From contig CDRNVI010000177.1 in assembly GCA_977017575.1 (NCBI GenBank), positions 1 through 64,000 on the forward strand: a stretch of 64,000 nucleotides of DNA, given 5' to 3'. Source of the DNA: Paramoeba atlantica (Eukaryota; Protista; Discosea). The position numbers were made by a program, and so were the translations under genes. Below are positions 6,856-44,814 of this stretch, piece after piece. A model generated the notes under the pieces. It was not told where the DNA came from, made no database searches, and saw only the letters and a program-made list of their open reading frames with translations. Numbering within the stretch: position 1 is the first letter of the stretch; every line of letters starts with the position of its first letter.

Positions 6856-6864
6856 CCTCCCCCC
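6856..6864 (-). promoter_or_regulatory. Polypurine tract
   Basis: GGGGGGAGG on the minus strand, immediately before the TGTTGGGG start of the 3' LTR. Confidence 0.88.
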
Positions 6865-13354: not shown

Positions 13355-14535
13355 TGTTCTGTTGATTGAGTTCGAGGTTGTTGAGGTTGCTGTCCCTGTA
13401 ACTGTTGCTGTTGTTGTGTTTGATCCAAAATTAGTTGTTGTTGCCTTTGAAGGATTTGAGGATCGAGTCAACCAGTTGTTTGTTGGGAATCAAGGAGAAG
13501 TTGTTGTAATTGAGCAAGAGTGTGGGATTGAGGTTGTGATGCCGGTGGTTGAGATTGAGTAAGAGCTTGCTCAAGTTGTGGTAAGGCTCCCTGAGGTTGT
13601 TGGTATTGTATTGCCTGACGAGGTGTGACAGAAGTATTGTTGGTCCCAGTTGGTTGTATAGGAAGAAATGTTGTACCAGGGGTTGGTTGGATTGCTCCCA
13701 CAGTTGTGCTTGGATTCTGAAACTCAGGTGGTTGATGTGTTACGGCTTGGGGTGTTGGTAAGATGCCAGCTTGTCTTGGATTTTGTTGGGTTAATGCTGT
13801 TGTCAGGGGTGCGTTTTCAAATAGAGGTCCAGCTGCACCAGATTTCGGGCAATGCATGGCCTTATGTCCTAAGGCACCACATGTGAAGCACTTCCCTTGA
13901 AAAGAACCAAACTGACCTCTACCACATCCTCGGCCCCGGCCTCGGCGGCGTGAGTAACAATCTTCCATATCATGTCCAGATTTCCCACAAAAGTCACAAA
14001 TCCTCCCTCTTCCTGTTGGAGGTTGAAAAGAGTTTGGTTGTCCACTTGACCAGGATGCAGATAGAACTGTTGGGAACTGTTGCACAGGAGATTGTTGAAA
14101 TTGTCCTTGGGGAAATTGTTGCACTGGAGATTGTTGAAATTGTCCTTGGGGAAATTGTTGTGCTGGGGATTGTTGAAATTGTTGCTGAGAAGATTGTTGG
14201 ATTTGTTGCTGAAGAGCTTGTTGCGCTTGTTGTATTTGTTGTTTTTGGAGAGCCTCAATATTTACCTTGTACTGACAATCTGAGGTGGAATGTTGTGATG
14301 GCCTGCAAAATGAACATCGAAAAGGGGTCCCCTTCTGCAAAACTGCTTGCATTGCATCTGACTGTTTCAAAAGGGCATTCACCACTGCATGTTGGTCAGG
14401 ATCCCCGTTCCTTGAGCTTGAAGACTTGGATTCTGATTTCGCTTTCTGCCACGCTCTGTCCACATACTCCTTGTCCTTCAACCATTCCATAAATTTCATG
14501 TTGTTCCCTGAATTGTGTTTTACTATTCTTGACAC
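13317..14535 (-). CDS. Gypsy gag, C-terminal part with three CCHC zinc knuckles; the N-terminus appears to be lost
   Basis: CSFCRPSQHSTSDC, CDFCGKSGHDMEDC and CFTCGALGHKAMHC. The Q-rich frame continues past TGA 13468 to TAA 13317. No ATG start: the frame begins at a rearrangement junction. Confidence 0.88.
13321..13354 (-). promoter_or_regulatory. Candidate -1 ribosomal frameshift signal (gag to pro-pol)
   Basis: G GAT TTT in the gag frame at 13354-13348, a 6-nt spacer, then a GGGGG-N11-CCCCC stem. The pro-pol frame is -1 relative to gag. Confidence 0.55.
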
Positions 14536-14555
14536 CTCATTAGGGCTGAAAGGGA

Positions 14556-14734
14556 GCTTTTCTCAGTTGTGATTCCTTTTGTTGTTCTTCTTCTTGCTTT
14601 TCTGTTTCTTTGTTGTTGTTTTCTTGTTCTGTTTGTGTTGGCTGGGGATCTTTCCCATAAAGGTTTTGATCCAGAGTTTCTGTTTCTCTTTCTTTTCTCT
14701 TGTTTTCTCTGTTGATCCTGCTCCCCTCCTCACA
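14556..14734 (+). repeat. Inverted internal fragment of the element's own LTR end
   Basis: Reverse complement of LTR positions 6231 to about 6409, ending exactly at the LTR terminus CTCCTCACA. Confidence 0.92.
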
Positions 14735-14797
14735 ACTTCCATGAGTTCTGTGACTTCTGTGACTCCTGTGACTACACGCAACTATTTCGTTTGTTTG

Positions 14798-15906
14798 GAA
14801 TAGAACTGATCCGGATGACCTTGCTCAGAACCGGCCAAAACAGGGTGTTTCCAAAATATTGCTCAAACAACTTCAAAAAGGGAACAGAACTTCAGAAATT
14901 ATCAAGAGTCTTAGGTTGCCACTAGAATCATCGAAAAGCAAGAGAAGGGAAGAGAAAACCACTCAAAAGAACAGTTCAAAACAAGATCCAATCACTGTGG
15001 GGAAGTTTCCAAATTTCCGCGAGAACAGGCCCAGAAAGGAGGATAAATTTCCAAAAATTACAGGGATTGTTCGAAATGTCTTGGAGATTGCCAGGGGACA
15101 AAATAAAGGGAAAGAAATTACTGGAGAAAACAAGTCCAAATATAATTGTCTCAAATTGTCCAAAACAGAGGTTCTTCGAAAATTTCGCTGGAACAAGATC
15201 AGAATAGGGGATAACCTTCTGAAAAGCCACTTGGTAACTCCCAAACACCTCAAGAGTCGCCAACAAACAAGAAAGGGAAAAGAAACTGTCCAAAAACAAT
15301 TCCAAAACACAAAGGGCTCAAAGAGAGAAATCTTCCAAAACACAAGAACTCAAAGAGAGAAATCTTTTAGAAATTCCGCCAGAACAAGGTCGAAACGAGG
15401 AATAAATTTCTGAAAGGTCACCAAAAGCTTCCAAACACTTCAAGAATCGCCCACGACAAAATAGAAGAGAAGACTGTTGAGAACACACGTCCGAAACACA
15501 ATTGATTCAAATAAGTCTTTTCGCAAATTCCGCAAAAACAAGGTTAAAAGGGGAATCCAATTCAAAACAAGGTCCAGAGAGAGAATCAAATTCTGAAAAT
15601 TCGCAGGGGACTTTGAATTGTTCTAGTAATCGTCAAAAAAAAAACAAGGTCGAAAAGCAAAATCAAAAGAAAACAATTTTGAAGCTCAATTGTTTCAAAT
15701 AAGAGTATTTTTCTTTTTTTCAGAGATTCCACTGAAACAAGGTTGAAAGAGGGAATTGAATTCTAAAAATTCGTCAAAAGCTTTGAATCACCTTGAGAAT
15801 CAATAAAAGACAAACAAAGAGGGAAAACCAACAAGAAAACAGCCTTGGAACAGAATTCGCCCAAAGAGAGGAAATTTCCGGAAATTCCAACAAAACAAGG
15901 TCAAAA
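14798..15906. repeat. Direct duplication of about 1.1 kb within the gypsy 5' leader (copy 1)
   Basis: Near-identical to 17535-18649. Contains recurring AACAAGGT(C/T) motifs. Confidence 0.93.
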
Positions 15907-17534
15907 AAATATGATCCAAGATTCCAAACAAATGAAATAGTTGCGTGTAATCACAGGAGTCACAGAAGTCACAGAAGTCACAGAAGTCACAGAAGTCACA
16001 GATCCAATTCAGGCTGGATGAAAAACAAGATGTCCCAGAGTTACAAAATACAGTGTATAATTCAAGGTTGGTCCAGTCAGGCAAGGTAACTCAAGAAAGA
16101 AATCGAAACAAAGGATTCTCCACACAATAAGCCAGTAATTTCAAGGAAGATTTCCAGAAAATTCGATTCCTCAATCCAGGCAAAGGAATTGGACCACAAA
16201 GATTCAAGGGATTTCGCTGGAATGAATACTGGTTGAAGAAAACTAAACTTCTGGGATGCTCAAAAATCTGCAAAATCCAAAAACAGAAAGAGTTTGAAAG
16301 GACTTTGTCACAAACAGTTCCAATAATGAACAAATCAGAGAAATACAGGAAAGTTCAGTGACTGGAAATAGCACAGAAGGAATCAAAGGAATCAAGAAAA
16401 AATAATCCCAGAAAATCCCAGCAAACAAATGATTATCCAACAGCAATAATTCAAAAATGTCTTATGTTGTCACTCAATTCAAAAGAAAAAAGGGAACAAG
16501 ATGCTAGAAACTCGAAAATTGCCAAGCAGGATGGAACTGTAAGGTTTCAGGGCTGAAAAACAGTGAGAAATTCCAAAACTTTCACTCTAAAACAACAGGA
16601 AAGAGTTCAGAAGAGAGGGGTGTCTTGTTGTCTCGCTTGGGTAAGGAGCAAACAAGGCCACAAAAGAACTCAGTAATCCAAATGCAAAAACAGGGAGTCA
16701 CTCTGGCGGAAAATACAAGAGAATATCCGAAACTTGAAGCCCATGGAACAATGAGAGTCCAGAATAACCAACAAAGGGATTGTTTCTGAAGAAGGTCCAA
16801 TCCAAGAGAGAACTTCAATAAATTTAGAAGTGATTTGTCGCTAATACTGACTCAAACAATGTAAGGTTCAATCACAAACTCAGGAAATCAGATGAAATAT
16901 TTGAGAATCCAAGAATTGGCTCAAAAATGATTCAGAAAGAATATGATCTCAGAAAGGTCTTTCCTGTCCCACAAAATTCTACAAGGAAGGTTGTCCACAA
17001 ATTCAACTCAAGGATGAAGGGGAGAACACACTCAAAATCAGCGGATCACGAAAGAAAAATCAGGAATCCTCACAGTCACACAAACAAAACTCTCCGAAAT
17101 ACCACCAAAACAGAACTGAGATTGAGGGTAATTTCTTAAGAAATCGTCAAAAGGAGTAACAATGTTTTGCAAATCGCCAAAGGAGTAAGCAGAGAACCGA
17201 AAGACCACTAAAGGAAATGACTTCAAATTTAATTAACTTGAAAATCGGCCAAACAGGGTATTTCTGGAGTGTCACTCAAACAGGCTCAAAAGAGGGGAAC
17301 AAACTTCTCAAATTTGTTGAAAACCTTTTAATGCTAATAGAATCGTCAAAGAACAAAACAAGAACAATAAAACTACTAAACAGAGCAATTCAGAGGGCGA
17401 TCCAGTCAATGTGTGGTTCTCAAAAATTCCGCAAACAGGGCACAAAACAGTGGGTAAATTTCCAAAAATTATGGGGATTGTTCAAGATATTTCAAAAATC
17501 AACTAAGAACAAAATAAGAGGAAAGAAAACCACA

Positions 17535-18649
17535 GAATAGAACTGATCCGGATGACCTCACTCAGAACCGGCCAAAACGGGGTGTTTCCAAAATATTGCT
17601 CAAACGACTTCAAAAAGGGAACAGAACTTCAGAAATTATCAAAAATCTTAGGTTGCCACTAGAATCGTCGAAAAAAGCAAGAGAAGGGAAGAGAAAACCA
17701 CTCAAAAGAACAGTTTAAAACAAGATCCAATCACTGTGAGGAAGTTTTCGAATTTCCGCGAGAACAGGCCCAGAAAGGAGGATAAATTTCCAAAAATTAC
17801 AGGGATTGTTCGAAATGTCTTGGAGATTGCCAGGGGACAAAATAAAGGGAAAGAAATCACTGGAGAAAACAAGTCCAAATATAATTGTCTCAAATTGTCC
17901 AAAACAGAGGTTCTTCGAAAATTTCACCAGAACAAGATCAGAATAGGGGATAACCTTCTGAAAAGCCACTTGGTAACTCCCAAACACCTCAAGAGTCGCC
18001 AACAAACAAGAAAGGGAAAAGAAACTGTCCAAAAACAATTCCAAAACACAAAGGGCTCAAAGAGAGAAATCTTCTAAAACACAAGAACTCAAAGAGAGAA
18101 ATCTTTTAGAAATTCTGCCAGAGCAAGGTCGAAACGAGGAATAAATTTCTGAAAGGTCACCAAAAGCTTCCAAACACTTCAAGAATCGCCCACGACAAAA
18201 TAGAAGAGAAGACTGTTGAGAACACACATCCAAAACACAATTGATTCAAATAAGTCTTTTCGCAAATTCTGCAAAAACAAGGTCAAAAAGAGGAATCCAA
18301 TTCAAAACAAGGTCTAGAGAGAGAATCAAATTCTGAAAATTCGCAGGGGACTTTGAATTGTTCTAGTAATCGTCAAAAAAAAAACAAGGTCGAAAAGCAA
18401 AATCAAAAGAAAACAATTTTGAAGCTCAATTGTTTCAAATAAGAGTATTTTTCTTTTTTTCAGAGATTCCACCGAAACAAGGTTGAAAGAGGGAATTGAA
18501 TTCTAAAAATTCGTCAAAAGCTTTGAATCACCTTGAGAATCAATAAAAGACAAACAAAGAGGGAAAACCAACAAGAAAACAGCCTTGGAACAGAATTCAC
18601 CCAAAGAGAGGGAAAAATTCCGGAAATTCCAACAAAACAAGGTCAAAAA
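17535..18649. repeat. Direct duplication of about 1.1 kb within the gypsy 5' leader (copy 2)
   Basis: Near-identical to 14798-15906. Confidence 0.93.
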
Positions 18650-19228
18650 TCGAGATAAATTTCCAAAAATTTGTTTGAAGCTTTAAATAACCTTGAGAAT
18701 CAACAAGGAAAGAGAATGGGGCGCAAAATCGGTGCAAAAATCGATTCCAAAACACAAGTGCTTCAAATCAGGGTTCTTTTTCTTAAAAATTGACCAAAAC
18801 AGAGCCAAGAAAAGAGAAACAAGTTTCCAAACCGGTTATTTGGGTCTCAAATATCCTCAAGAGTCACAAAGGGATGAAACAAAACAAAAGGAGTCACAAA
18901 AGAAGAGGTTTGAAAGTCACCACCTTAAAAAAAGGAGGGAAAAATCACAAAAACTGGAACTTTCTTGCTAATAATCCAAAATCGGTCAGGGAAAATGGGC
19001 AGGATTCACCAACAACCAAATTCAATCGTAAAACAAAAGAAAAGAGAGCAGAAAAAGCAAAAGAAAGATCAAGAGAAATGAAAAACCGATTTTCGCCACA
19101 AAATCTGGGTCCAAAAACGCGAAAGAAACACAGGGAGAAAGGCCTGAAAAATGCACAGCCACTTTAGAAGGAGAAGAATCAAAAAAAACAATCCTTGATA
19201 AATCAGAGTGCAATCAATCTCACTGAAG

Positions 19229-19243
19229 TCACTGGGAGCACCA
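19229..19243 (-). promoter_or_regulatory. Primer binding site
   Basis: TGGTGCTCCCAGTGA, 2 nt inside the 5' LTR, complementary to a tRNA ending ...TCACTGGGAGCACCA. This resembles the eukaryotic tRNA-Ile(UAU) 3' end (tentative). Confidence 0.85.
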
Positions 19244-19245
19244 CG

Positions 19246-19870
19246 TGTGAGGAGGGGAGCAGGATCAACAGAGAAAACAAGAGAAAAGAAAGAGAAACAG
19301 AAACTCTGGATCAAAACCTTTATGGGAAAGATCTCTAGCCAACACAAACAGAACAAGAAAACAACAACAAAGAAATAGAAAAGCAAAAAGAAGAACAACA
19401 AAAGGAATCACAACTGAGAAAAGCACAGAATCACCGAAACTCAACTCAAATCGGAATCTCAAGCCTACACAGCAACCAAAGAAGGAAGAAAGCAACAAAA
19501 GATGATGACAACAAAAGAAGAGAACAGAAAGCAAGCAAGGCAAGCCAAAAGATCACAAAGGAAAGCAAAGAGAGAGAGAGAGAGCGACAAGAAAGCAGAA
19601 AGAAAGCAGAAGGGGCAAAGCAGCAAGAAAAGGGGGCCAAAAACGCGAACGCGAAAACTGAATAAAAAGAGCACTAAAAATCTCGTGATTTTGGCTAAAA
19701 TCACGATAAAATGGCGCGTGGCTGTCTGTGAGGCTCAGGGCTCTCCGAAAGGACCAAAACTCATGATAAAAGGCATCAAGGAAGCTCAGGGAAGGCTCAG
19801 GGAGGCTCAAGGAACTGAAAAGGCACTGAAAGGCACAACTTCCGTGTTGGAAGCAGGTCTCACCCCAACA
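19246..19870 (-). repeat. 5' LTR of the gypsy element
   Basis: TG...CA ends. Retains more CpG than the 3' LTR (e.g. ACGCGAACGCG vs ACGTGAATGTG). Confidence 0.96.
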
Positions 19871-21334
19871 GATGGGCTCCAAAACCAAGAGATCCTTCTC
19901 TCTCCTCTCTCAGAACATTTCTGTGAGAGTGGAGAATTTCTATGTAGGGGATGGGTGCTTGAAATGTGTGATCTATAATTTGTCTCTTCTACAAAGACCT
20001 CAGATTAAGCAGAACCTTCTGAAGTTCTTTTTGAGGGGTCTTCCAACTGTGGATAAGATTGCCCATTTTACATCTGTGAGTCCACTTTGTCAGCTGTGTA
20101 GGAAAGCCAAAGAGTCAAGGGTGCATCTCCTTGAAGGATATCTGAAAGCTAAGGTGATTTTGAAAACTATTGGGAGGAGATGCTTTGTTTTAAAATTCCT
20201 GGGTGGGAAAGTGCTGACTTTATGTGTGGATTTATGAACCAGTATCTAAAGAAGGCTGAAGCATCTGCAGTGAGTGCAACTCTATTGAGCTTGTGGATCA
20301 CTGTATGTGCAGAAGGATTGAAGTTCCCAAGCTTTGCTGTTAAAATTTTTGATGAAATTGCTAAGACAAACAAGATGATCCCTAAACAAACAAAAAGAAA
20401 GGTTCTCCCTAAAGGTAAAAGAGAAGTGAAACAACCAAAGTTCAAGTACCCTGCCTTGCAAATGTTTTATAATGGCTCTGGGCATGTAAATCCCCACATT
20501 GGAGGATCTGGGTATGTGATTATTAAGGAAGGTTTGAAGGTTGGAGGTGGATTTGAAACAATCCCACTAAACTCAAATAATTTGGGTGAGTTTTCGGGAT
20601 GCTTAGCTAGTCTACAACAAGTTATTGGTTTTGGGCAACATGTAGAGATGGTGGGAGATTGTAAAATTCTGACTGAGGCAGCACCTAAGATGAAACCAAT
20701 TGATAATTTTGAGTTCAATGAGATCCTATCTGAGATCAGAAATATTGCTGAGAGTAAATTTGCCAAAGTGAAGTACACTCATGTGTATTGCAAATTCAAC
20801 AAGAGGTCAGATACAATTGCAATAGCAGCAAGTCACTCTAAAGAGGATGGGATGGAAGCTGTGTTTGATAGGAACTGGGATCCAAGATCGAAACAACTAG
20901 CAACAACCAGTGAGGAATGGATTATTGAGAATTCCAAGCTGTAGAAGTGGGTAATGAAACCATTGGATTTGGATTGGAGCTTCCCTATGAAGAAAGTTCA
21001 GTTTAAGAAGAGGTTTAAGGATAAGGTGATTACAATTAATAATATTTACTTCCCAGTACAAGCTGCACTGGATGAAGCAATGATTTCTCCTGTGTTCATT
21101 TCAGATGATATTGTTAAGTGGTTTCCAGAAAGAACTGCACTTGGAGAGATGTTAGAAAGTTTTGTTGAAAAAGAAAACCAAAAATGGAAAGAGGAGTATG
21201 AACAAGCAAGAAACTGTTGGTTGAAGAGTGCAATGAGACCTTCCATTGTAAGGAAAATTATTAGGCCTATTAAAGCTGTTGAGAAGAAAAGAATTTTGAA
21301 AGAGATTCAAATGAGAAATAGAAAGAAACATTAG
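19871..21334 (+). pseudogene. LINE copy A ORF2 C-terminus: zinc finger and RNase H
   Basis: Matches copy B 34596-36060; CQLCRKAKESRVH, SNNLGEFSGCL, VGDCKIL, HVYCKFNKRSD. Confidence 0.93.
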
Positions 21335-21478
21335 AGCTTTTGGCTACTAAGTTGGCACTGAAGTGGGTTGATCCTACTTGATTATAATAATTTAATTTAA
21401 GTGTATTCTTAGGTATCTAAATTACACTTCATTTCAATAAATGGCATCTCTGATGTTTAAAATTTAAAAAAAAAAAAA

Positions 21479-21779: not shown

Positions 21780-24735
21780 TTGTGAAGTGGTCAGAGTTTA
21801 AGGAAGAAAAGAGTGGGCAGGTGAAGGAAAGAAGGAAAGGAAAGAAAGGGAAAAGAAAGAAAGAAAAAGTCAAGGGCAAATCATGGGAAAGATTGGCAAT
21901 GTATCACAAAGGAAACCAACTAAGTAAGTTTATTTCTTTTATCAACAAACAAAAAGAGTATTCATATGAGACAATAAATATAATAAGTGTGGAATTAACA
22001 AGAAATAAAATAAAATGAAAGACAAAAACACACAAGAAAAAGGATGTGGTGGAGAGATTAAATCATAGATAAATGTTACAGAACATAGAATTAATTAACA
22101 TAAAGATTATATAAAATAAACAAATAAGATGGTGTGAAAATATTAAGAGAATAACTTGAATTCAGAGTGAGAACTGGGTGGGAAGAGCTCAGATGAGAGA
22201 GACAGGAATACATGCAGAATCAAAATAGTTTGTACAGTCTTACAAATATTCATCAGGGATATTCACACAACAGGGGAGCACAGTGGTGTACAAAGAGAAA
22301 CAGATTAATTTACATAACATGGAATCAGTTTCCACCAGGATTCTGACACATCCTTCCAAATGAATATGTTTCATATAAATCAGAAGAAGAAATTTCACAA
22401 CACATCAGAAATCAAGAACAATTAAAGCAAAACAGCAAAACAAATGGAATTTACATTTAGCACAGCAAATCAAGATGAGGTGAATAGACAGAGACCCATC
22501 ATTAAACCAAATATCAAGCCATCAAGGAAATCAGAATGAATCACAAAATCACAAAAACAAATATCAGTTGAATAGAATGGAAAAACATAAGGGATTGGTG
22601 CAGAAACAATCAATAATTCAAAACATATTACTTTGAAACAAAAGAGGGATCAACATGAGAGCACAAGAGATAATCAAAGAACTTAAGGTATGGACATGGA
22701 GAACAAGACAGAAAAATTTGATTCAGAAATTCAAAAATAATATAACTCAGGAAAAGAGAAATCAATCCAACAAAAACAGCAGGGAATAGGAAGAGAGGGA
22801 TTTGTGTTCACTATTGGAGACACAGGTGGTGCATTGAATCTTCAGAAATGCTATGTTCACTCATTATTGAGCAAGGATTGGAAGGAAGAAAGAATAAGTG
22901 TTCAATAGGAATCACTATTGCATAGTTCCTCTGGATATGCTACATTTACTCATCATTGAGAAAGGAAGGTGCTGAAGATGTTGAAAAGAAGAATCTTTCA
23001 AAGAAAAGCAAAACAAGTCATCATAAGATGAACCAGTAAGATCAAGAGTAGAAAATCAAAATGTTTTCAATAGAGACAAAGAAATCAAAAGTCCAGTAGA
23101 AATTATTAAAGTGTTATAAGCTTCAGAGATAATTGGGAATAGGTGAGAAGGACATTGGACAGAAAGCAACAGGAATGGAGTACAACAGCAACAAAAAAGA
23201 TAAAAAAGATCATTCAGAATAGTGTTGAAAACATGGTTCAGAGGCAAAGCATTCCAGGTATGCATTTTCAAAATTCAGGGAATGAATTTTCAAAGATAAA
23301 TCGCATATCACATATATAGAAACAAATATATTATTATACAAAGAATAAATGCTGATCAAATCAACAAATGTTACAATTGCATTGAGATTTTAAGAAGAGA
23401 GGTGAGAAAAACATGAGCTGAAAGAAGAACATCAAAGAAAAAATGTCATGGGGCTAGTGAAAATCTATTGCAAGGGTGAGAAAAACAAAAACTCAGAGAA
23501 TCAGAGAAAATAAAATTCAAAACTCACTTGAAAGAACAAAAACAAGGTAATGGAGTTATAAAAGAACAAAGAGGGGACATGAGAACTCCCTTTGAAGGTA
23601 ACAGGTGTTTCAAAAGTAAAGTAATGTTAAAAAGCATTGTTTAAAGGATTGCAAAGATAAAAGCAGTCATCAAATTGCAGGTAGAATAGAAAAAAAATGG
23701 GATAGCAATCTCTAAAAATGATAATAACATTGAAACAGAGGAAGAAAGAACAATATTTACAATCAACCATAAAACAAAAGAGAATTGGAAAGCAAAAACC
23801 AAATCAAAAGATTAAATTGTATAACAATAATTTGACAAGAATAAACTATAGGGAATAATGAAGGAAATCAAATAATACTAAAATATTTTTAAGTGAAGCC
23901 AAGAAATTAGTCACAAGTCATACAAACACTTCTTTCCAATTTGATATTTTGATTTCATCACAATTAAGGCATTTCAAAACAAGAGAGAGTATTAACCATC
24001 AAATCATAAAACTGAATCAATAGAGGAAATTCAAAATCAACTTATTAAAGACCAAGAAAAGACTTAATTCCAATAAATCAACCAATAATTAGAATAAAAT
24101 GTAAATGGTGCAAGATGCTCAATGGAACTTACTGAAAATAAAGTCATTACAAATCAAATTCAAGAATCAGCATCATTACTAGAGAATAAACAAAAACATA
24201 AGACTATAACAGAAGGAAAAGCAAATCAAGATTTCTCAAAAAAAAAAAAAACTTAGAACAGAGAATATCAATGATAAGAAAGAAGCATCAGCAATTGAAT
24301 CAACTTTAAAACAAACAAATCAAATTAGAAAGGTCAAAACTTGAGGGAAAGTACAGTAATCAAAATCAAAACAGCTTCAGGGGTAGTACATCTGAAATGA
24401 CATAAATACAATTTTTTCATGGAATACCCTTCCAACACCAAAATGGGTTTCAAAATTCAAGTAGGAGTATCTAAGAGAGGAATCCAAGTGAAAATAAAGT
24501 CCAGAATCAAAATCACAAAAGGTAAGAGGAAGGTATAAATTTGATAATTTCAAAGCAAAAAAGGAAATCAGGAAAATTTCCATCATCAACTAAAAACAAA
24601 AGAACAAAAAAAATCATTTTGAGGCATCAATTCAAGAATAACAAATTCAAAATGATATTGTTACAAGAAAAATAAGAAGATGGAATCAATTATTTCTTTA
24701 ATAAAATCAACACAGGGATGAATTCAATCAGTTAA
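21780..24735 (+). repeat. Unclassified decayed repeat of about 3 kb (copy 1)
   Basis: Colinear with the reverse complement of about 38935-41880. The matching antisense ORFs 24377-24589 and 39053-39244 confirm this. No recognisable domain. Confidence 0.85.
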
Positions 24736-24742
24736 AAAAAAA

Positions 24743-26935
24743 TTTTTTTTTAATTTAAACATCAAAAATATCATTTATTGAAATGAAGTGTAATCTAGAT
24801 ATTTAAGAATATACTTAAATTAAATTATTATGGTCAAGTAAGATTAATTCACTTCAATACTAATTTAGTAGCTAAAAGTTCTAATGTTTCTTTCTATTTC
24901 TCATTCAAATCTCTTTTAAAATTCTTTTCTTTTCATTAACTTTAATAGATTTAATAATCTTCCTTTTTATAGAAAGTCTTATTACACTTTTCAACTAGTG
25001 GTTCCTTGCTTGCTCATACTCTTTTCTTCACTTTTGATTTTCTTTCTCAACAAAACTTTTTAACATTTCATCAAATGCAACTCTTTTAGGAAACCACTTA
25101 ATAATATTATTTAACTTTCTTCACAAAAAAGCTTCAATTTAAATCCAATGGTTTCATTACCCATTTTCATAATTTAGAATTTTTAATAATCCATTTCTCA
25201 TTGATTGTTGTTAGTTGCTTCAATCTTGGATCTTAGTTTTTATCAAACATAGTTTCCATTTCATCCTCTTCAAAGTGACTTGTTGCTATTATAATCACAT
25301 CTGATCTTTTGTTGAATTTGTAATACACATGAATGTACTTTATTTTGGCAAATTTACTTTTAACAATATTTCTAATCTTAGATAAGATTTCATTGAACTC
25401 AAAATTATTAATTCATTTTAGATGCTGCCTCAATTAAAATTTTACAATTTCCCACTATCTTTACATGTTATCCAAAACCAATAACTTATTGTAAACCAGT
25501 TAAGTATCTTGAAAACTCATTCAAGTTATTTGAGTTTAATGGAATTGTTTTAAATCTACCTCCAACTTTCAAATCTTTCTTAATAATCACACATTCAAAT
25601 TCTCCAATGCAGAAATTTACATACTTAAAGCTATCATAAAACACTTGTAAGGTAGAGTATTTGAACTTTAGTTGTTTCACTTCTCTTTTACCTTTGGAGG
25701 AAGCCTTCTTTATAGTCTAAAGTTTGAGAATCATTTTGTTTGTCTTAGCAATTTCATCAAAAATTTTAATAATAAAGCTTGAGAACTTAGATTCTTCTAC
25801 ACATACAATAATCCATAAGCTCAATAGAGCTATACTCACTGCAAATGCTTTAGCCTTTTTTAAATATTAGTTTGTGAATTCACACACAAAGTTAGCACTC
25901 TTCCACCTAGGAATCTTTAAAACAAAGCATTTCTTCTTAATAGTTTTTAAAATCATCTTAGCTTTCAAACATTCTTTGAGAAGGTGCATCTTTGACTTTT
26001 TGGCTTTTCTACACAGCTGACAAAGTAAACTCACAAATGTGAAATGGACAATCTTATCCACAGTTGGAAGGCCCCTCAAGAAGAACTTCAGAAGATTTTG
26101 CTTAATCTGGAGTCTTTGTGGAAGAGATAAATTATAGATCATACATTTCAAGCACCCATCCTCCACATAGAAATTCTTTACTCTTACAAAAATATTTCAA
26201 AATAGAAGAAAGAAAAATCTCTTGATTTTGGAGCTCATCTTTACTTGTTCTAAGATAACCCTATTAGCTTCTAAAGCATCAATCTTTATAGCTTCAATGA
26301 ACAATGGATTCTTATAATGATCTTGGAGAGGCTTTCTTGATACCAGTAAAGTCCAGTTAAACAAAATAAGATGTTTAACTTAGGGTTTTTCAAAGAACAA
26401 AAGACAAAGAAAAGTCATTACATAGGACTTTAGATTTGTATATGCACCTAAGGCTGAATGAATGGCTTTCCACATCTTTGAGGAGATAGCTTTTGAAATA
26501 AGCTTAAATCTTGTTAAATAATCTATACAAGGAATAAAGTAAGTATTAATTATCTAAACTCTTTCATTAAAGCTGCCTTTCTTTTGCTTAATTGCTGTTC
26601 CAACCTTTTGTATTTTCTTGATCATCCCTTCTCAATCCTTAGTTGGGTTTATTCTTCAAGAAATTATAATTTCCAAGTATACAATCTCCTCTTTCAAATA
26701 ATTAGCCAAAGGCATTTCAATCCAAGGGTTTTTTTCAGTTAATAATACAAAATATTTATTATAGTTGAGTTTAGCTTCAGTTCTTTGTTCATATTCTTGG
26801 AAGATTGAGGTTAAAGAATTTATGGATTGAACCCTATGGAGGAAAAAGATTAAGTCATCCATAAACCCAATAAGCTTCTTAAAATCATCTCCATTGTTCA
26901 AACTAACCAACAAAACATCAAAAAGGATAATAATA
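24743..26935 (-). mobile_element. LINE copy C: 5'-truncated, strongly AT-mutated
   Basis: Aligns to copy B from about 33890 to the poly(A). ORF remnants 26656-26913, 25867-26166 and 25486-25680 match RT, zinc-finger and RNase H segments. Confidence 0.93.
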
Positions 26936-27123: not shown

Positions 27124-28337
27124 TAGGGTTATTAATTAGGTATTCAGGAATTCTTTTCTTCCAAGAGTTGATCTTCCACTCTTTTACACTGGTCCCTTCA
27201 ATCATTACAATATGATCTTTAAAACCAAATAAGATTCCATTTATAAACAAATGATCTTCAGAAGTCTTCAAAGAAAGGAAAATATAATCAATATACTGCC
27301 CCTGAAAATGGATGGGTTTTGACCAGTTGAGGCAAGACAAATTCATATCAGAAAGATGTTCAATTAATTTCTAGCAATTGGTTTTGTTTAAATCTCAATT
27401 GAGATTCCTAACCAAAATATTTTTGCTCTAGGAGAAAAATCAGGAAGATTCTTCCATTAGGTGTTCCAGTTTCAAACCAGGGTGGTGATAAACATTGAAG
27501 ATTAAGAATTTCTGATTTTGGATGAAAACTTTTAATTCAAATGATTTACCTTCATTTTTCTCAAAAAAGAAGAGAATGAGATCTTTCAATCCTTTCACAT
27601 GTCTAATTCCAATCATAAGACCACATTTCCTCTCTGAGAAGGAATCACAAAACCAAATGTACTTCCTCAAGTAGTTCTTAAGATGATTAAAATCATTTTC
27701 AGATGTTGCATAGGTTTCCTGGAGGAAGATGTATCAAAGCCAAGAGTTAACTGTTTTTTTTTTTTTTTTTTTTTTTTTTTTTCTTTTTGAAGCAAACTTT
27801 ATTCAATTAGTAGTTCTTAATCTAAGCCATTTAAATTACATTAAATTATGTTTGTTTTTAATCTTTAATGAGAGGTAAAGTTTTTAAACTTTAGCTTAGT
27901 TTAGTTAGTTTTTATACTGAACTTTAGAACTTCTACAAGTTCAGGCTGGAGAATGTACATCAAAAGAGAGAATAATTCAAAACTCTTTTCAAGGGAATTT
28001 ATTTTCAACTTTTTAGCAAATAAGGCTGAAATGTAATCTGTTTTGATTTTCACACTTTTTCAAAAGCTTTTCACTTCAATCAAATTATTTTACAGCACCA
28101 AAAAAATTTTCTAAAATATTGAAAAACTGGGATTTGAACTTGCCCCCCTAGGGTTGAATATAGTTGAATTTATAACTAAACTACAGGCACTAACCCTCAA
28201 GAGCTAGCTATTATTTTCTTGCAGATCTTGAGTTTTTTTTCATTTTAAAGTTTATTTATGTTCCAGGAGAGGACTTTCAAGTTAAGGAAATAAAAAAAAT
28301 ATTGAATTTAGGATAAATTGGAAGGATTGAATTCCAG
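27124..28337 (-). pseudogene. AP endonuclease domain of a second, diverged LINE family
   Basis: VLSWNIN (28262-28277), IFLQET, LRKYIW, FNVYHHPGLK, YIDYIF and FKDH. Homologous to, but clearly different in amino acids from, copy B. Interrupted by a SINE-A. Confidence 0.85.
27754..28197 (-). mobile_element. SINE family A (decayed)
   Basis: Reverse complement of 1635-2053 with a poly(T) at 27754-27782. Degenerate 13-bp TSD CAAGAGTTAACTG / CAAGAGCTAGCTA. Confidence 0.9.
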
Positions 28338-29340: not shown

Positions 29341-31614
29341 ATGGAAACCTCTTCACCCAGTGTAAAGGAAGGAGAGGGAATTTCTGCTAGAAACGCCTGG
29401 TCAGGATGAGCGGATAGTGAATCATTTGCTCAAGTTGTAAAAAAAAGTGAAAGAAAGAAAAGACCTCTCGAAACCAAGGAAGGCTTTCCAGCCTTTAAAG
29501 GTCTCAGCGATGTGTTACACAAGATTGATCGGAACAATGTCAGACTATACCAAGGTTTAGTCGTGCGCCTGAACCCAAAAACTGTTGTTGGAGCCAAGTT
29601 GAGACCAACAAAGTTAGTGGGATTACTGGATTTTAGACTGGGACTTCCCAACTTCAATGAGATTATCAAAGCGATTGAAAATGTGACTTCTCTTAAAGGA
29701 AAGATTTTTGTGAACGTCAAGCAGGGCCATTTTGTGATCTCAGCGCTCGAGAACATGGATGCTGCCAGTGTAGAAAAAGAGTTTTTGAGCAAAGGTGACG
29801 AATTGGCAAAAAAACTCAAGAAATCTTTTGTCTGGAGGAACAATGAGGACGCAAAATTGTGGGGGCTCAAAATCAGGGTTCCCTTCGAAGCTGAGGGCAT
29901 GGAGTGGATCCAGAATCTTTTTGCTGGCCCAAATTCTCTTCCAAGACATAATTTGAAGGAAGTAGTTCAAATTGCCCAAAATTGTATTGTTTTGGTTTAC
30001 AACCAAATTCCCATTAACCTTGTCCGTCTCATCGCCCACACCAAGGGGTGGTTGGGGATTAGCAATACTCAAGCTCGAGTTTCTGTTTGGACCCCAGCGA
30101 GGCCCTTTGATAAAGTGGTGAAATGCCTCACTTGCCAAATTAACCATCTTGCTTGTTTGGATTGTTTATTTGAAATTTTACAAAAAAAGGATCCAAGTGA
30201 AGTTGGCAATATGGCAAGAACGGAAATGTACTCGATCAACACCTGCAACCCCAAAGGAGTTAAGATAAGAAAACAAGCTGCCAGAGATGGTGTGCAATTT
30301 AACTTCGTCTTGCCTGAAGGAGTCCCCTCATCCTGTGCCCCCCTCGGTAAAACTGGTGAGCCTATGGTAGTGGGTCCTGAGAGAATAGATCAAACTCCCC
30401 CCAAGTCACAAGCTTCTAAGCCTGCTGAAGGTCTCTCCCCCATTGGTGTTAAAAAAGATGGCTCAAATTTACCTGTGCGTAATGCTGGTGGCCAAGGGTT
30501 GGTGTCTCATTCACCTAATGTTATTCCTGCCGAACCTACCCCTCCGAAGGGCCCCCTTCCTGTGAAGAAGAGCCATGAAGTTGTACCCAATAACTTCAAA
30601 GTACCTTCTTCCACAACTAAGGGATCAGCTGTCCAAAGGAGTTCCTCTGTGGGTCCAGTCAAGCGTGATGCTGCAGCTCTGAGTAAGACGAGTTCGTTTT
30701 CTCCCATCAAGACCAAAACCCCTTCGAAAATTAAAACGATAAATGGGAGCAGCAAACAAGGTAGTGGATTCTCAGTGCCCCCCATATTGCCAGCCCAGCA
30801 ACCACAAGCGCAACCAAAAAAGAAAAGTACCCGGACATCGGTGAACACATGTTCCAACCCAGTAGTCTCTTCCTTTAAGTCTGCTTCTTCACCAAAAGAG
30901 ACTGTGGGCAAGTCAAGAAATTGCGCTGATTCTGTGATCCAGAAGAAGGAGAACAGAAGAAGCCAACCTGTTTCCAGCCCTGCTCCCATCTTCATCAACG
31001 AAGAAGATTTACCGGTCGAAAATGGATTGGTGGAGGAACCTGACAATAGAAGGGAGGCGAAATCAATGTTAAAGAAATTGAACCTGAACATCGAATGGGC
31101 AAGCGCAACCGAGGATTTCAGAAGAGTTTATGAGGGGTTGGAGAATGGCTCAATTTTCCCAGAGGATAGGAGATTAAGGCATCAAGCTTTCTATTTGGTT
31201 GAGTACCTTATGAAGACAGGATGCACCAAGAGGAAGAAGGGCGGATCAGAAGAGGTGATTAATGTTAGAGTAGGGTGGGAGAAAGGAAAGAATGAGAGTG
31301 AAGAGGAAAAGGGAAAAATATCGCAAAAGAAAAGAAAAATCGCACAAGAAAAGGAAAGCGGGGAAAGAAAGCTGGTGAATTTCCCAAATGAGGAAGGGGT
31401 GGGTGTTGTTCATCCACTTATGGAAAAACCCGAGGAAAGAGGCAGTGATGTCCAAGACGGTGTCCCCTTTTCCTTTTCGTTTGAAGGGTCAGATATGAGA
31501 GTGGAAGAAGAAGAGGAGGAAGAGGGGGATGCTATGGAGATCGAAATGAACAAGGAGTTTGCCAGAACAACCCAAGCAAGGAGAGAGAGTGAGGGAGGGA
31601 AGTCAGTTGTTTAA
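29341..31614 (+). CDS. LINE ORF1 (about 757 codons; one in-frame TGA at 29407)
   Basis: ATG 29341 is in frame with ORF 29512-31614. Contains the Cys/His cluster KCLTCQINHLACLDC, a P/S/K-rich linker and an acidic C-terminus. Confidence 0.85.
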
Positions 31615-31704
31615 AAAAAAAAAAAAAACACAAAAACACAAAAACACAAAAACACAAAAACACAAAAACACAAAAACACAAAAAAAAAAAAAAAAAACAA
31701 ACAA

Positions 31705-34700
31705 ATGATGACTAAACTCAGGAAGAAGAAGAATAAGAAGAGAAAGGAAAAGGGATTGGTGGATATTAGAAGTAGCTTTGGTGTGGGCCCCCAAGTAGCC
31801 CCTCCCCTGACAACAAATTTGCCTAATGTATCCCAGTTAGAGTGCCTCCCATCAGGTCCTCCGAGTGAGCCAGGAGTTGACCCCTGTGATAGGTCCTCAG
31901 CTAATTTAAGTGAGAGTGATGAACATAGGTTTCCTGATGCACGTGTTATCTCCTGGAATATGAATGGGATTCAAAATTTCGAAAAATTGAGAACCCTTCA
32001 GAAGATGGCTGGGAGTTGTCGACCTCTTTTCATTTTGATTCAAGAATCTCACTCTGATTTTGAATGCGACCTTGATCTCATCAGGAACCAATTGAGGAAG
32101 TATATCTGGTTGAGAGACAACTCCTCTGGGAAGAGGAGGGGTCTGCTCATTGGAGTTAGGCGGATGGAGGGGGTGAAAGAGATCTCTCCCTGTTTCTTTG
32201 ACCAGACCATGAGTGGATTATTTGGTGTCCATGTGACTATTGGATCGACGAACTATTCTGTCCTGAATATATACCGTCACCCTGACCTCAAAGTAGCCAC
32301 CATCTCGCAAGAGGCTGCTCGTTTTTTCGACCAGAACCCCAGGAGCATAAATATCTTTGGGGGTGATTTCAATTGGGATGTGAAGGAAAAACAGATGGGG
32401 GAAATTGAAAAGTGTTGTGCTTCTCTCTGTATGTCACGCTTGAAATGGGATGAACCCACACATTATAAAGGGAGGTGTATTGACCATATCTTCTTCTTGT
32501 CCAAGGCTCCATTAAAACGTTTGTTTATCAATGCCATCCCGTCCGGCTTTAAAGATCATGCACTGCTGATTGGAGGATCCTCGTTTAAGGAATGGGAGAT
32601 TCGGGCGAATAAGAAATCCATCCCTAAGTATCTGATTAATGACCATGGATTCATCAACACTCTTATTGAGAGGATGGATACCTTCTCTGAGGGTGATGAT
32701 CCCAACGAGTTTTTGACCAGATTTAAGACCACAGCTTGGGAATTAGTTCCCTACTGGAGAGAAAGAAACACTGAGGCAGCATTGTTTAGAGAACTGTGGA
32801 AGATCCACTCTCTTGTAAGATCCCTTCGCAATTCTCGCATTTTTAGGAAATCTACTGTCCAGAGGCCATACTTTTCCCTTGAAATGGGTCTGTTGGACCA
32901 GGCCTCCCTTGGTTGGAAAGGTCTGAAGGAAGGGAAGTCGTGGAGGAGAGGAATAATCCCCAGAATGATTTCTGCAGCGCTCAAGAAGATTGAATGCATT
33001 GAAGGACAGTTGGGGATCTTTATTGACAGTCACCCTGCGAGGCCTAAAGCGAGATCATCCCCAAGGGTTAAAGGAATTGTTGTGGATGGGGTCATTTCCA
33101 GAGATAATGGTGTGGTCCAGAAAGCAATTAAAGAATTTTGAGGGAATCTATTGGGCTCAGTGAGGCCATACAACAAGGACTCCCTCCAGAAGCTGATTGA
33201 GAACCATAAACCTCGGTTTCCTAAGGTTGATTACCATGTTGTTGATGGGGCCAAGGTTGATAAACTGCTGCGACGGTGCAATAATTCAAGCGCTGGCCCA
33301 GATGGTATCCCCTTTGCTCTCTACAGAGTGACAAGCGAACAGCTGTGTGATATGTGGTGTGAACTTATCCAGAGAGCTGGGGAATCAATGGATTTCCCTG
33401 AGTCGTTTGGGGAGAGTCAGCTTGTGTTACTACCTAAGATTGAGAATATTCTTCGTCCTGACCAATTTCGACCAATAAGTATTACCAATTCTGATTATCG
33501 GATTGTGATGAGATATTGGGCCAAATGGCTGATGGAGAGTGCCAGAGAGGTGATTTCCCCAGAACAAAATGCTATATTTGCTGGAAGGTCCATTGATAAT
33601 GCAGTGGAATCGATACATGATGGGTTTATGGAAGTGGTAGTGGAGGGCAAAGATGTGACCATCCTCCAAACTGATTTCTGTAAGGCCTATGACTATGTTA
33701 ACTGTGAAGCCCTGATGGAGTTGCTGATTGGGTTGAATGCTCCACCCCAAGCCCTTGAAGTTGTATCTAAAGTTCTGCGAGAGTCAGATACATGGCTCCC
33801 AACTGTAGGATCGAATGATAAGACACAGAAGGAAGCCATCAAGAGCCGGACTGGTGTGTGACAAGGCTGCCCCATTTCACCTCTTCTGTTCATTATCCTT
33901 TTTGATGTTTTATTGGTTAGTTTGAACAATGGGGGTAACCTTGAGAAGCTTGCTGGGTTCATGGATGACTTAGCCCTTCTCCTTCACAGGGTTCAGTCCA
34001 TAAATTCCTTGACCTCAACCTTCCAAGAATATGAACAAGGAACCGGGGCCAAACTCAACTACAACAAATGCTTTGTATTGTCAACTGAAAAATTCGCTCC
34101 TGTGGGCCCTTGGGTTGAAATGCCTTCAGTTAATTATTTGGGAGAGGAGACTGTGTACTTGGGAGTTACAATTTCTCGAAAAATGAACCCAACTAAAGAC
34201 TGGGAAGGGGTGATCAAGAAAATGCAGAAGGTTGGAACAGCAATTAAGCAAAGGAAAGGCAGCTTCAAGGAGAGAGTCTGGATGATCAATACTTACCTTA
34301 TTCCTTGTATGGGTTATTTGGCAAGATTCAAGCTTATCTCGAAAGCTGTCTCCTCGAAGATGTGGAAGGCCATTCGTTCAGCCTTAGGCGCATATGCAAA
34401 TCTAAGGTCTTGTGTAATGACCTCCCTTCGTCCCCCCTTCTTTGAAAAACCCCAAGTTAGACACCCTATTCTGTTTAACTGGGCTCTGCTGATATCGAGG
34501 AAACCTCTTCAAGATCATTATAGGAATCCATTGTCCATTGGGGCCATGAGGATTGATGCTTTGGAAGCTAGTGGTGCTATCTCAGAACAAGTGAGGATGG
34601 GCTCTAAAACCAAGAGATCCTTCTCTCTCCTCTCTTGGAACATTTCTGTGGGAGTGGAGAATTTCTATGTGGGGGATGGGTGCTTGAAATGTGTGATCTA

Positions 34701-36060
34701 TAATTTGTCTCTTCCACAAAGACCCCAGATTAAGCGGAACCTTTTGAAATTCTTTTTGAGGGGTCTTCCAACTGTGGATAAGATTGCCCATTTTATATCT
34801 GTGAGTCCACTTTGTCGGCTGTGTAGGAAAGCCAAAGAGTCAAGGGTGCACCTCCTTGAAGAATGTCCAAAAGCTAAGGCAATTTTGAAAACTATTGGGA
34901 GGAGATGCTTTGTTTTAAAGATTCCTGGGTGGGAGAGTGCCGACTTTGTGTGTGGATTTACGAACCAGTATCTAAAGAAGGCTGAAGCATCTGCAGTGAG
35001 TGCAGCCCTATTGAGCTTGTGGATCACTGTATGTGCAGAAGGATCGAAGTCCCCAAGCTTTGCTGTTAAAATTTTTGATGAAATTGCTAAGACAAACAAG
35101 ATGATCCCCAAACAAACTATAAGAAAGGCTCCCCCCAAAGGTAAAAGAGAAGTGAAACAACCAAAGTTCAAGTACCCTGCCTTGCAAGTGTTTTATGATG
35201 GCTCTGGGCATGTAGACCCCCACATCGGGGGAGCTGGGTATGTGATTATTAAGGAAGGTTTGGAGGTTGGAGGTGGATTTGAAACAATCCCACTAGGCTC
35301 AAATAACTTGGGTGAGTTTTCAGGATGCTTAGCTGGTCTACAACAAGTTATTGGCTTTGGGCAACATGTAGAGATGGTGGGAGATTGTAAAATTCTGACT
35401 GAGGCAGCGCCTAAGACAAAACCAATTGATAACTTTGAGCTCAATGAGATCCTATCTGAGATCAGAAATATTGCTGAGAGTAAATTTACCAAAGTGGAGT
35501 ACACTCATGTGTATCGCGAATTCAACAAGAGGTCAGATGTGATTGCAATAGCAGCAAGTCACTCTGAAGAGAATGGGATGGAAGCTGTGTTTGATAGGAA
35601 CTGGGATCCAAGATCGAAACAACTAGCAACAACCAGTGAGGAATGGATTATCGAGAATTCCAAGCTGTGGAAGTGGGTGATGGAACCATTGGATTTGGAT
35701 TGGAGCTTCCCTGTGAAGAAAGTTCAGTTTAAGAGGAGGTTTAAGGACAAGGTGATTACAACTAATAATGTTTACTTCCCAGTACAAGCTGCACTGGATG
35801 GGGTGATGATTTCTCCTGTGTTCATTTCAGATGATATTGTCAAGTGGTTTCCAGAAAGAGCTGCACCTGGAGAGATGTTAGAAAGTTTTGTTGAAAAAGA
35901 AAACCGGAAATGGAGAGAGGAGTATGAGCAAGCAAGGAACTGTTGGTTGAAGAGTGCAATGAGACCTTCCATTGTAAGGAAGATTATTAGGCCTATTAAG
36001 GCTGTTAAGAAGAAAAGAATTTTGAAAGAGATTCGAATGAGAAATAGAAAGAAACATTAG
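31705..36060 (+). CDS. LINE ORF2: APE, RT, zinc finger and archaeal-type RNase H (in-frame TGA at 33139 and 33859)
   Basis: ORFs 31705-33141, 33151-33861 and 33913-36060 share one frame. Motifs ISWNMNG, LIQESH, GGDFN, FRPISITN, DFCKAYD, GFMDD, YLG, CRLCRKAKESRVHLLEEC, FYDGSG, SNNLGEF, VGDCK and HVYREFNKRSD. Confidence 0.95.
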
Positions 36061-36205
36061 AGCTTTTGGCCACTAAGTTGGCACTGAAGTGGGTTGATCC
36101 TACTTGATTATAACAATTTAATTTAAGTGTATTCTTGGGTGTCCAGATTACACTTCATTTCAATAAATGGCATCTCTGATGTCTAAAATTAAAAAAAAAA
36201 AAAAA

Positions 36206-37330
36206 GAGAGGAGATTTGGAAATCACAAAGTCTCTCTTGAGGGAAAAGAGAGTTGAGGGGGGTGGGGGGAGTGGGAAGTTGAGAAATTAGTTGGAACTTG
36301 TTGATAACTGTTGAAGAAAGGGGTTGAAGTTGAGCATCAAATTTCAGGGAGGGGAATTGAAAGAGCTCATATTTTCTAATATTTTAATTATTTTTTTTTC
36401 CTTTTTTTTTTCTTTTATTTACCATCTTCTGTTCTATTTTTTAGTATTTCTTTCCTTTTTTTTAATTAACTTCCAACTTAGAAGGGTTGGCACCTGTAGT
36501 TTAGTTATAAATTTGATTATGTTCCACCCTAGGGGGGTGAGTTCAAATTCCAGTTTTTTGATATAAAAGAAAATTTTTCTGGTGCTATAAAGTGATTTGA
36601 TTGGAGTGAGGAGTTTTTGAAGAAGTGTGAAAATTGGAACAGATTACATCTCAGCCCTGTTTGCTAAAAAGTTGAGGATAAATTCCCTTGAAAGGAGCTT
36701 TGGATTATTCTTTCTTCTGATGTGCATTCTCTAGCTTGAATTTACAGAAGTTCTAAAGTTCAACATAAAAACCAACTGAACTAAGCTAAAGTTTAAAACT
36801 TCATCTTTTGTTAAAAGTTAAAAACAAACATAATTTAATGTAATTCAAATGGTTTAGATTAAGAACTACTAATTGAATAAAGTTTGTCTTAAAAAGAAAA
36901 AAAAAAAACTTTTAATTTAGAACTTTTTTTTAACTTTTTTTCTTTTTTTCTAATTTTTTTTTTTTTTTTCTTTAAACTTTTCCTCTTTTTCTTTTAAACA
37001 ATAGAAAAGCTTTCTTGAAGGTCATTTGAAGATAATTTTGAATTTCCATCAAGATCAGTATTCTAAAGATAAGAGGGAAAGAGGGAATTAACAATTTTTT
37101 AACTATTGTTAGAATGAAAATCAAATGAAAAAGATGAAAATTCATGTTTATTTGAATTACTAAAAGAGATAATGTTTTTCTGGTTTTACAAACTAATGGT
37201 GATGTTCTTTTTCTTGATTACTTTTTTGACTTGTGATCTAGGGACTCCATAGGAAACACCTTCAGAGGAGAGGAACACTTTGGACACCAGTGGAGGAAAG
37301 AGGGAAAGAAACATTAGTGGAGGAAGAAGG
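36206..37330 (-). pseudogene. Probable upstream continuation of the family-2 LINE (ORF2 N-terminus, A-rich spacer, ORF1 end)
   Basis: Removing LINE B and the CAC element joins this sequence to the VLSWN frame (..SKSPLEFNPSNLS..). ATTGTTTAAAAGAAAA near 36990 mirrors the GTTGTTTAAAAAA ORF1 end of copy B. Confidence 0.5.
36485..36906 (+). mobile_element. SINE family A
   Basis: Colinear with 1635-2053. Degenerate TSD AACTTCCAACTTAGAA / AACTTTTAATTTAGAA, differing by C>T changes. Confidence 0.92.
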
Positions 37331-37668: not shown

Positions 37669-38354
37669 GGAAAGGACACCTCTAGAATTTCTCACTTTAT
37701 TACTTTTTTCCTTCTTTGCAAGAATGGTTTTGAAAATTGTGTTTAATTTTTTAACTTCCAATATTTTGTTTATGTTGCCTTTCAATTTCTTTTTACTTTG
37801 CCTCACTTTCTCTCTATCTTTATTGATTATTTTTCTTGTTTTTTCAGCTTACAATTTTATACTGGTGTGCACTGTTTTGAATTATATTTCTGGCAGCCAT
37901 CTTTGACTTAGCACATGGTTTTTCAATAAACACAGTTCTGATCACACCTATTTTTGTTTTTCTCCTTATGTTATAGAAGATTCATGTTATTTTTCTTGTT
38001 TCTTGGAGATTATTTTTGTATTTATCAATGTCTTTTTTTGCCTGTTATGACATTCTGTTTTAACTTTGTTCTTTGTTTTGCCCAACTATTCTTTTAATTT
38101 TATTTCTATTTTATAGATTTTCTCTGCCTTTGATTTGCTTAAGATGATTTCTTATTGATTTCCATGCTTTATTTTTGTTGGTGAATCAATTCAGTCCTCT
38201 TGCTCATTGTTTGTTTTGGTTATTTGTCTTTGGTTATGCTTTTAGAACAACATATTATTTGGAATTAACATTCTGAATAACTTCAGCTTACACAACACTG
38301 TTTCCTTGTATAATCTTGACTTGAGTTTTGTTTGTCAACATTTCTCAAAGCCTC

Positions 38355-41880: not shown

Positions 41881-41884
41881 CCTC

Positions 41885-44710: not shown

Positions 44711-44814
44711 TATTTTATTATTTTTTTTTTAAGTAAAAAATTTAAATTTAAAGAAATTGATTTTTAAGATTGTTTCTTTTTTTTTTTTTTTTTTAATTTT
44801 TGATTTTTTGATTT

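Follow-up and report, generated by a model that had tools for sequence, protein, structure and literature searches.

Transposon erosion by the deamination of cytosines is known in plants and animals that methylate their DNA and, in the form of repeat-induced point mutation (RIP), in fungi. On plant and animal transposons, spontaneous deamination of methylcytosine affects CpG dinucleotides first, is symmetrical between strands, leaves no clusters and is confined to silenced repeats. In a 2022 review, RIP was listed as a process of fungi only, with the remark that it possibly evolved elsewhere (PMC9246332). In the protist Bigelowiella natans, localised hypermutation of viral inserts was described in some lines only, where it consists of T/A to C/G changes at TpA only (bioRxiv 10.64898/2026.01.13.699255). 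The present study concerns a 64,000-nt stretch of DNA (positions 1-64,000 of contig CDRNVI010000177.1, hereafter the window), in which self-comparison revealed three copies of one long interspersed nuclear element (LINE), designated A, B and C. These copies have been eroded by G:C to A:T transitions in a very strong form: 36% of the G/C sites are gone in copy C, the damage is confined to the repeat compartment of the genome, and the assembly yielded neither a recognisable methyltransferase nor an APOBEC gene. A first-pass annotation of the window, made from its letters only, had drawn attention to the bias and suggested non-CpG methylation, a RIP-like or an APOBEC-like process as its origin.

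Cytosine loss in LINE copies and other repeats

A three-way alignment of copies A, B and C assigned 331 changes to the branch of copy C over its whole length, of which 287 were G:C to A:T transitions, 22 were A:T to G:C transitions and 22 were transversions. Thirty loci of the LINE family were also fetched from the same genome, and each copy was scored against the state common to 11 young copies. On this scale, copy C displayed 294 differences (267 G:C to A:T, 18 A:T to G:C and 9 transversions), corresponding to changes at 36% of its G/C sites and 1.7% of its A/T sites. Likewise, G:C to A:T changes made up 62 of the 68 differences of copy A and 72 of the 74 recorded for another copy, L012. The same bias was observed in all 20 copies compared, and LINE copies from 24 other repeat-rich contigs were affected too. 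New stop codons had arisen through TGG to TGA or TAG, CGA to TGA and CAA to TAA changes in copy A (11 stops) and through these and similar changes in copy C (14 stops), so that the earlier description of copy A as an intermediate stage of decay marked by such codons was borne out.

The bias had initially been noticed in the 3' untranslated region, where a comparison by hand of copy B (36061-36190) with copy C had given about 25 substitutions, all of them transitions and about 23 of them G:C to A:T. Our count was 26, composed of 23 G:C to A:T, 2 T to C and 1 A to T; the numbers were thus closely reproduced, except that one transversion is present. As also reported, this stretch of copy B contains no CpG, because none remained there.

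Both strands were affected equally, since the per-site rates in copy C were 0.364 for C to T and 0.356 for G to A. Same-strand runs of changes were about as frequent as expected (116 observed, 117 expected), and the density of changes was uniform along the copy. Non-CpG contexts were nearly flat, with rates of 0.32 at CpA, 0.43 at CpC and 0.32 at CpT, in agreement with the three contexts that the first-pass annotation had listed on both strands. A slight effect of a 5' pyrimidine over a 5' purine was recorded (odds ratio 1.67, p=0.0025), and the rate at CHG sites (0.46) was slightly above that at CHH sites (0.33).

The annotation was right in stating that the changes are not limited to CpG, but it missed that CpG is the fastest target. 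In the last 2 kb of the element, 26 CpGs were common to the two least-decayed LINE copies; young copies retained 7 to 19 of these 26, copy A retained 1 of 19 and copy C 0 of 25, and the lost ones had almost always become TpG or CpA. Over the whole element, 92 of the 216 CpG cytosines of copy B are now T in copy A, against 178 of its 2743 other cytosines. Per cytosine, the rate at CpG was 10-25 times that of other cytosines, and the per-site rate of the non-CpG cytosines was still about 20-25 times that of A:T to G:C. Across the window, the observed/expected ratio (o/e) of CpG was 0.0-0.5.

From young to old LINE copies, the ratio of G:C to A:T changes to all other changes remained close to 10, which fits a chronic process. 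The conversion of C to T is cytosine-specific, equal on both strands and evenly spread, and it looks chronic. A dependence on copy number along the LINE was also considered and rejected, as the divergence between copies A and B (6.8% in the 5' part, 5.3% in the middle and 5.9% in the 3' part) displayed no gradient.

A LINE-like transition bias was carried by the short interspersed nuclear elements (SINEs), the long terminal repeat (LTR) pairs and the segmental duplicates, with transition to transversion counts of 99:0 for the duplicated copy C locus, 286:7 for the inverted pair and 55:2 for an LTR pair (see Table 1), and the annotation had correctly extended the bias to SINE copies and LTR pairs. 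Among three SINE copies, G:C to A:T changes predominated in the two AT-rich ones. The Ty3/gypsy-type element nested in copy A encodes a protease, a reverse transcriptase, RNase H, an integrase zinc finger and a chromodomain. Nearly all differences between its LTRs are transitions, and its internal 1.1-kb direct duplication (14798-15907 and 17535-18649, 97% identical) displays 26 transitions and 1 transversion. The two LTRs of an element are identical at the time of insertion. The 55:2 spectrum of the LTR pair in the second, old LTR element therefore arose after insertion, in place.

Copy C provided a further view of erosion in place. With the internal deletion and a flank of 1.5 kb, it recurs on two other contigs of the assembly, C149 and C234, at 97-98.6% identity to the window copy, and the adjoining segment 21781-24731 was duplicated jointly with it on these contigs. 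Comparison of the window locus, including flanks, with the copy on C234 gave 99 transitions and 0 transversions. When the three near-identical copy C loci were polarised by majority, 65 of the 84 singletons were G:C to A:T, with G or C present at only 28% of sites. Erosion therefore went on after an already decayed copy C had been duplicated. The idea that copy C belongs to a separate AT-rich LINE subfamily was partly true, in the sense that the same decayed and deleted copy is found on C149 and C234; yet the duplicates kept gaining only transitions. An old LINE fragment, copy C has undergone its erosion in place. At and around the copy-C-like locus (L022, L023 and L024), contigs C234, C224 and C219 displayed 100% identity across at least 2.2-2.5 kb, which is probably due to assembly redundancy in the repeat compartment.

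Gene-rich DNA and the repeat compartment

As control, haplotype pairs of single-copy, gene-rich DNA amounting to about 64 kb were taken from paired contigs about 0.7-2% apart (C3/C30, C39/C40, C24/C74 and C52/C8). Over 45 kb, C3 and C30 displayed 313 differences, with a transition/transversion ratio (Ti/Tv) of 1.95 within long open reading frames (ORFs) and 1.5 outside them, and six additional gene loci contributed 104 transitions and 58 transversions. The pooled control comprised 305 transitions and 170 transversions (Ti/Tv 1.79), from which the repeat spectra differed with Fisher p values of 1e-8 to 1e-32. CpG o/e in gene-rich loci was 0.84-1.07, in contrast to the low values of the window; hypermutability of CpG to TpG or CpA is thus limited to the silenced compartment. 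The first-pass annotation had proposed a comparison with single-copy neutral sites, and the repeat spectrum was not shared by them: outside long ORFs, Ti/Tv was 1.5 and CpG o/e about 1. On the assumption of an equal transversion rate in the two compartments, C to T change is estimated, very roughly, to be raised 15-35-fold in repeats. No repeat family of the window escapes the process, be it the LINE, the SINE, the two LTR elements or the segmental duplicate; gene-rich single-copy DNA is not affected.

Every housekeeping gene looked up occurred as two copies on paired collinear contigs, 0-2.3% diverged (loci L031-L055), so that the 45.7-Mb assembly appears to consist of a genome of about 23 Mb present as two haplotypes or homeologs. 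The housekeeping genes looked up sit on C3-C74. The LINE 3' end had 37 matches, all of them on contigs C137-C238 and none on housekeeping-gene contigs, and all LINE flanks were AT-rich and CpG-poor. Separate compartments for genes and for repeats seem to exist in the genome.

In a gene-rich block of C3, a 0.5-kb inverted duplicate was found (C3:224326-224830 and C3:230076-230617, loci L038/L039; GC content 0.58, CpG o/e 0.9, 2.4% diverged). None of its 37 shared CpGs has been lost, and of the 12 differences between its members a single one is at a CpG. Duplication by itself therefore seems not to trigger decay, as judged from this one small duplicate, which may be under selection. In base composition as well as in CpG content, the duplicate is unlike the window's CpG-free repeats.

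The coordinates of the repeats and of two host genes discussed below are collected in Table 1. A SINE at 1634-2057 and a solo LTR at 2852-3484 interrupt the 5' and middle parts of copy A. Three other features of the window were recorded. A 320-aa ORF on the minus strand (42569-43528) with a partial DDE_1 transposase domain is a DNA-transposon remnant. At 44807-45559, in a bin of GC 0.26, there is a tandem repeat of about 190 bp per unit, with copies 88-98% identical. Diverged units, 65-85% identical, form a long tandem array at 59400-62160, whose strand skew is extreme at 60-62 kb (-0.66 for GC and -0.68 for AT).

Table 1. Location and characteristics of the repeats of the window and of the JBP1-type genes of the host genome
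Feature	Location	Strand	Characteristics
LINE copy A, 5' and middle parts	1-6230 (1-1632, 2054-2851, 3476-6230)	+	Intermediate decay
Ty3/gypsy-type chromodomain LTR retrotransposon	6231-19870	-	Nested in copy A; LTRs 6233-6864 and 19245-19870, 97.3% identical
LINE copy A, 3' part	19871-21478	+	Located after the nested 13.6-kb LTR element; G:C to A:T in 62 of 68 differences
Inverted relative of the interior (38929-41873) of the old LTR element	21781-24731		2.9 kb, 90% identical; 286 transitions, 7 transversions
LINE copy C	24743-26931	-	Old, 5'-truncated, internal deletion of about 107 nt; GC 0.28; zero CpG remaining; 82% identity to copy B
SINE copy	27771-28195	-	GC 0.27; G:C to A:T in 30 of 33 singleton changes
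LINE copy B	29429-36204	+	Young, near full-length; GC 0.42-0.45; CpG o/e 0.2-0.55; ORFs with RVT_1, zf-RVT and RVT_3/RNase H
SINE copy	36485-36908	+	GC 0.30; G:C to A:T in 20 of 27 singleton changes
Old LTR element	38344-42466		LTRs 38344-38934 and 41874-42466; 55 transitions, 2 transversions between them
JBP1-type gene 1	L037:6375-9050 (C3)		891 aa; Tet_JBP and J-DNA-binding domain
JBP1-type gene 2	L033/L034 (C39/C40)		About 1044 aa; assigned by Tet_JBP match

Candidate mechanisms

The genome contains two paralogous JBP1-type thymine dioxygenase genes, each in two haplotypes, whose best named relatives occur in Crithidia, Bodo saltans, Trypanosoma, Leishmania and Euglena (41-46% identity). 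By implication, base J would be present in the host organism. Judged by these relatives and by the J-DNA-binding domain, the host is a euglenozoan-type protist and not a fungus, the very case in which the first-pass annotation had considered that the bias would be notable. A JBP1-bearing contig in ENA was examined as a possible independent occurrence, but it was 100% identical to C30 and hence belongs to the same genome.

The explanation to which we commit, with confidence somewhat short of even, is a decay of marked cytosines in the repeat compartment. Cytosines there would carry a chemical mark, heavy at CpG and light at other cytosines, with CHG slightly above CHH, a distribution that would resemble 5-methylcytosine (5mC) on plant transposons. 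Spontaneous deamination would turn the marked cytosines into T, and repair would fail to reverse the change. The writer of the mark may be a methyltransferase missed by our hidden Markov model (HMM) searches, a recently lost one or a non-canonical one. This choice was made because the hierarchy of contexts (CpG well above CHG, CHG slightly above CHH) matches what methylcytosine deamination produces, as do the equality of strands, the unclustered distribution and the restriction to silenced repeats. Among the options of the first-pass annotation, non-CpG methylation accordingly fits the pattern best, even though six-frame HMM searches found no methyltransferase. Diplonema was reported to possess both base J and DNMT homologues (PMC10161547).

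Several observations weigh against marked-cytosine decay, the missing writer enzyme being the main objection. The enzyme searches were six-frame, exon-by-exon HMM searches of one 45.7-Mb assembly, and absences are to be read as evidence, not proof. C5-methyltransferases gave 0 candidates (PF00145; TIGR00675 at E<=10), with DNMT5/6-like enzymes left out of the search, and the SRA domain gave 0 candidates as well; JBP1, uracil-DNA glycosylase (UDG) and housekeeping deaminases were recovered, each in two haplotypes. Leishmania has DNMT6, yet 5mC is reported to be undetectable in it (PMC7463849), so that a methylation system is not a given in this group. Furthermore, the loads of individual copies vary beyond the prediction of a single clock (G:C to A:T against other changes was 72:2 in L012 and 37:9 in L030, p=0.003).

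If a methyltransferase was merely missed, the repeats would provide the first clear footprint known to us of transposon-targeted CG and non-CG methylation in the group; if there is none, they point to an undescribed cytosine-directed system. CpG loss is a sensitive marker of repeat age in this genome, where standard dating based on Ti/Tv would mislead.

The chief rival to marked cytosines dispenses with a methyltransferase altogether: unmodified cytosine would be deaminated and left unrepaired in silenced, possibly base-J-marked repeats, either spontaneously, with uracil repair excluded from this chromatin, or by an unrecognised double-strand DNA deaminase recruited there. We consider it possible but doubtful. 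It accounts for the missing enzymes, since DNMT, SRA and APOBEC genes were all not found by six-frame HMM search, and the strand-symmetric, unclustered and nearly context-flat non-CpG pattern suits action on duplex DNA. The JBP1 genes are also in its favour, as is the observation that 5-hydroxymethyluracil (5hmU) marks and silences transposons in dinoflagellates (PMC11572971). Yet, it does not account for the CpG excess, as a 10-25-fold difference is unexpected for the deamination of unmodified cytosine. Two UDG-family genes exist in the genome, and genes of the CDA fold (PF00383) were limited to a dCMP-deaminase-like gene, ADAT2 and ADAT3. Activity of ADAT2/3 on DNA was shown on single-stranded and hairpin DNA (PMC10354150), which makes this enzyme a poor fit to the unclustered, symmetric pattern observed here.

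A more general proposition covers the host itself: a base-J-bearing, euglenozoan-type protist without canonical DNA cytosine methyltransferase would erode its transposons by compartment-targeted mutagenesis, CpG first and then every cytosine. Put in these terms, the proposition is tentative and on balance unlikely. If true, it would represent a new route of genome defence by mutation, relying on a non-canonical cytosine-marking enzyme or, in association with J-marked chromatin, on a deaminase of duplex DNA or the exclusion of repair.

A true RIP-like defence, in which duplicates sensed by homology undergo bursts of mutation at a particular stage, sexual or other, is improbable. It would agree with a bias confined to repeated DNA, with the involvement of both members of duplicates and with copies riddled with new stop codons. 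Against it, the rates at CpA, CpC and CpT reveal no dinucleotide preference of the RIP type, and CpA in particular is not preferred; the load is graded and follows the count of other substitutions; and the gene-zone duplicate on C3, 2.4% diverged, retains all its shared CpGs. Moreover, the host is not a fungus, and six-frame searches for a RID/DNMT-like gene (PF00145, TIGR00675) gave 0 candidates. The annotation had recommended a proteome search for RID, Masc1 or DIM-2 methyltransferases and APOBEC deaminases, and six-frame HMM searches of the assembly gave 0 candidates for PF00145, TIGR00675 and APOBEC_N. Neither its RIP-like nor its APOBEC-like suggestion was upheld.

APOBEC-like editing of single-stranded DNA or cDNA during retrotransposition is very improbable: C to T and G to A transitions in retroelements and the slight 5' pyrimidine preference would suit it, but strands are equal, strand-coordinated runs and a TpC preference are lacking, and the differences between LTRs of one element or between segmental duplicates post-date insertion, so that cDNA editing was rejected on strand symmetry together with the LTR pairs. 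APOBEC_N gave 0 candidates at E<=1 in a six-frame HMM search that left out DddA-like, OTT_1508-like and SNAD/NAD families, and the kinetoplastid LmjF365940-type deaminase had no match, a weak blank as its model matched none of the control genomes either.

Equally remote is an ordinary genome-wide AT-biased mutation, visible in repeats merely through their neutrality: in most organisms no mutation class is more frequent than G:C to A:T, but this bias is ruled out by the single-copy pairs, which do not display the repeat spectrum even outside long ORFs, and by the equilibrium GC of about 4% implied by that spectrum, far below the lowest GC (0.24) of any 2-kb window bin or locus read.

Comparison with known systems

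Our literature search found no report of this pattern in Euglenozoa, and the closest described systems each share some of its features. Base J in kinetoplastid repeats and 5hmU in dinoflagellate transposons (PMC11572971) mark repeats, and thymine dioxygenases of the JBP1 type are encoded here as well. Both are, however, thymine modifications, which by themselves provide no explanation for the loss of cytosines. The hypermutation of Bigelowiella natans resembles the present case in that foreign or integrated DNA of a protist is mutated at a far higher rate than its remaining genome, and in that the spectrum consists almost purely of transitions; the direction is different, since C/G to T/A changes occur here at all cytosines, CpG first.

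Editing of retroelements by AID/APOBEC enzymes likewise proceeds through cytosine deamination, giving C to T and G to A changes. In contrast, the changes recorded here are strand-symmetric, unclustered, later than insertion and almost without 5' context preference, and an APOBEC-family gene was not found in the assembly. Fungal RIP, which depends on RID or DIM-2, has in common with the present process that G:C to A:T transitions ruin repeats, create stop codons and lower GC content. RIP prefers CpA in Neurospora and TpCpG in some basidiomycetes, whereas no preference of either type was observed here. The load was graded in a clock-like manner, which argues against bursts, a duplicate in the gene zone was spared, the host is non-fungal and a RID-like gene was not found by the same searches.

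Methylation-driven transposon decay, at CG, CHG and CHH in plants and at CpG in animals, differs in that here a C5-methyltransferase and an SRA reader went undetected in the assembly, the host is, from its JBP1 genes, a base-J-bearing organism of euglenozoan type, and non-CpG changes form the bulk of the decay. With this system the repeats of the window nevertheless share the restriction to transposons, the chronic course and the action on both strands, as well as the early loss of CpG, the ranking of CG far above CHG and of CHG above CHH, and genes that keep their CpGs.

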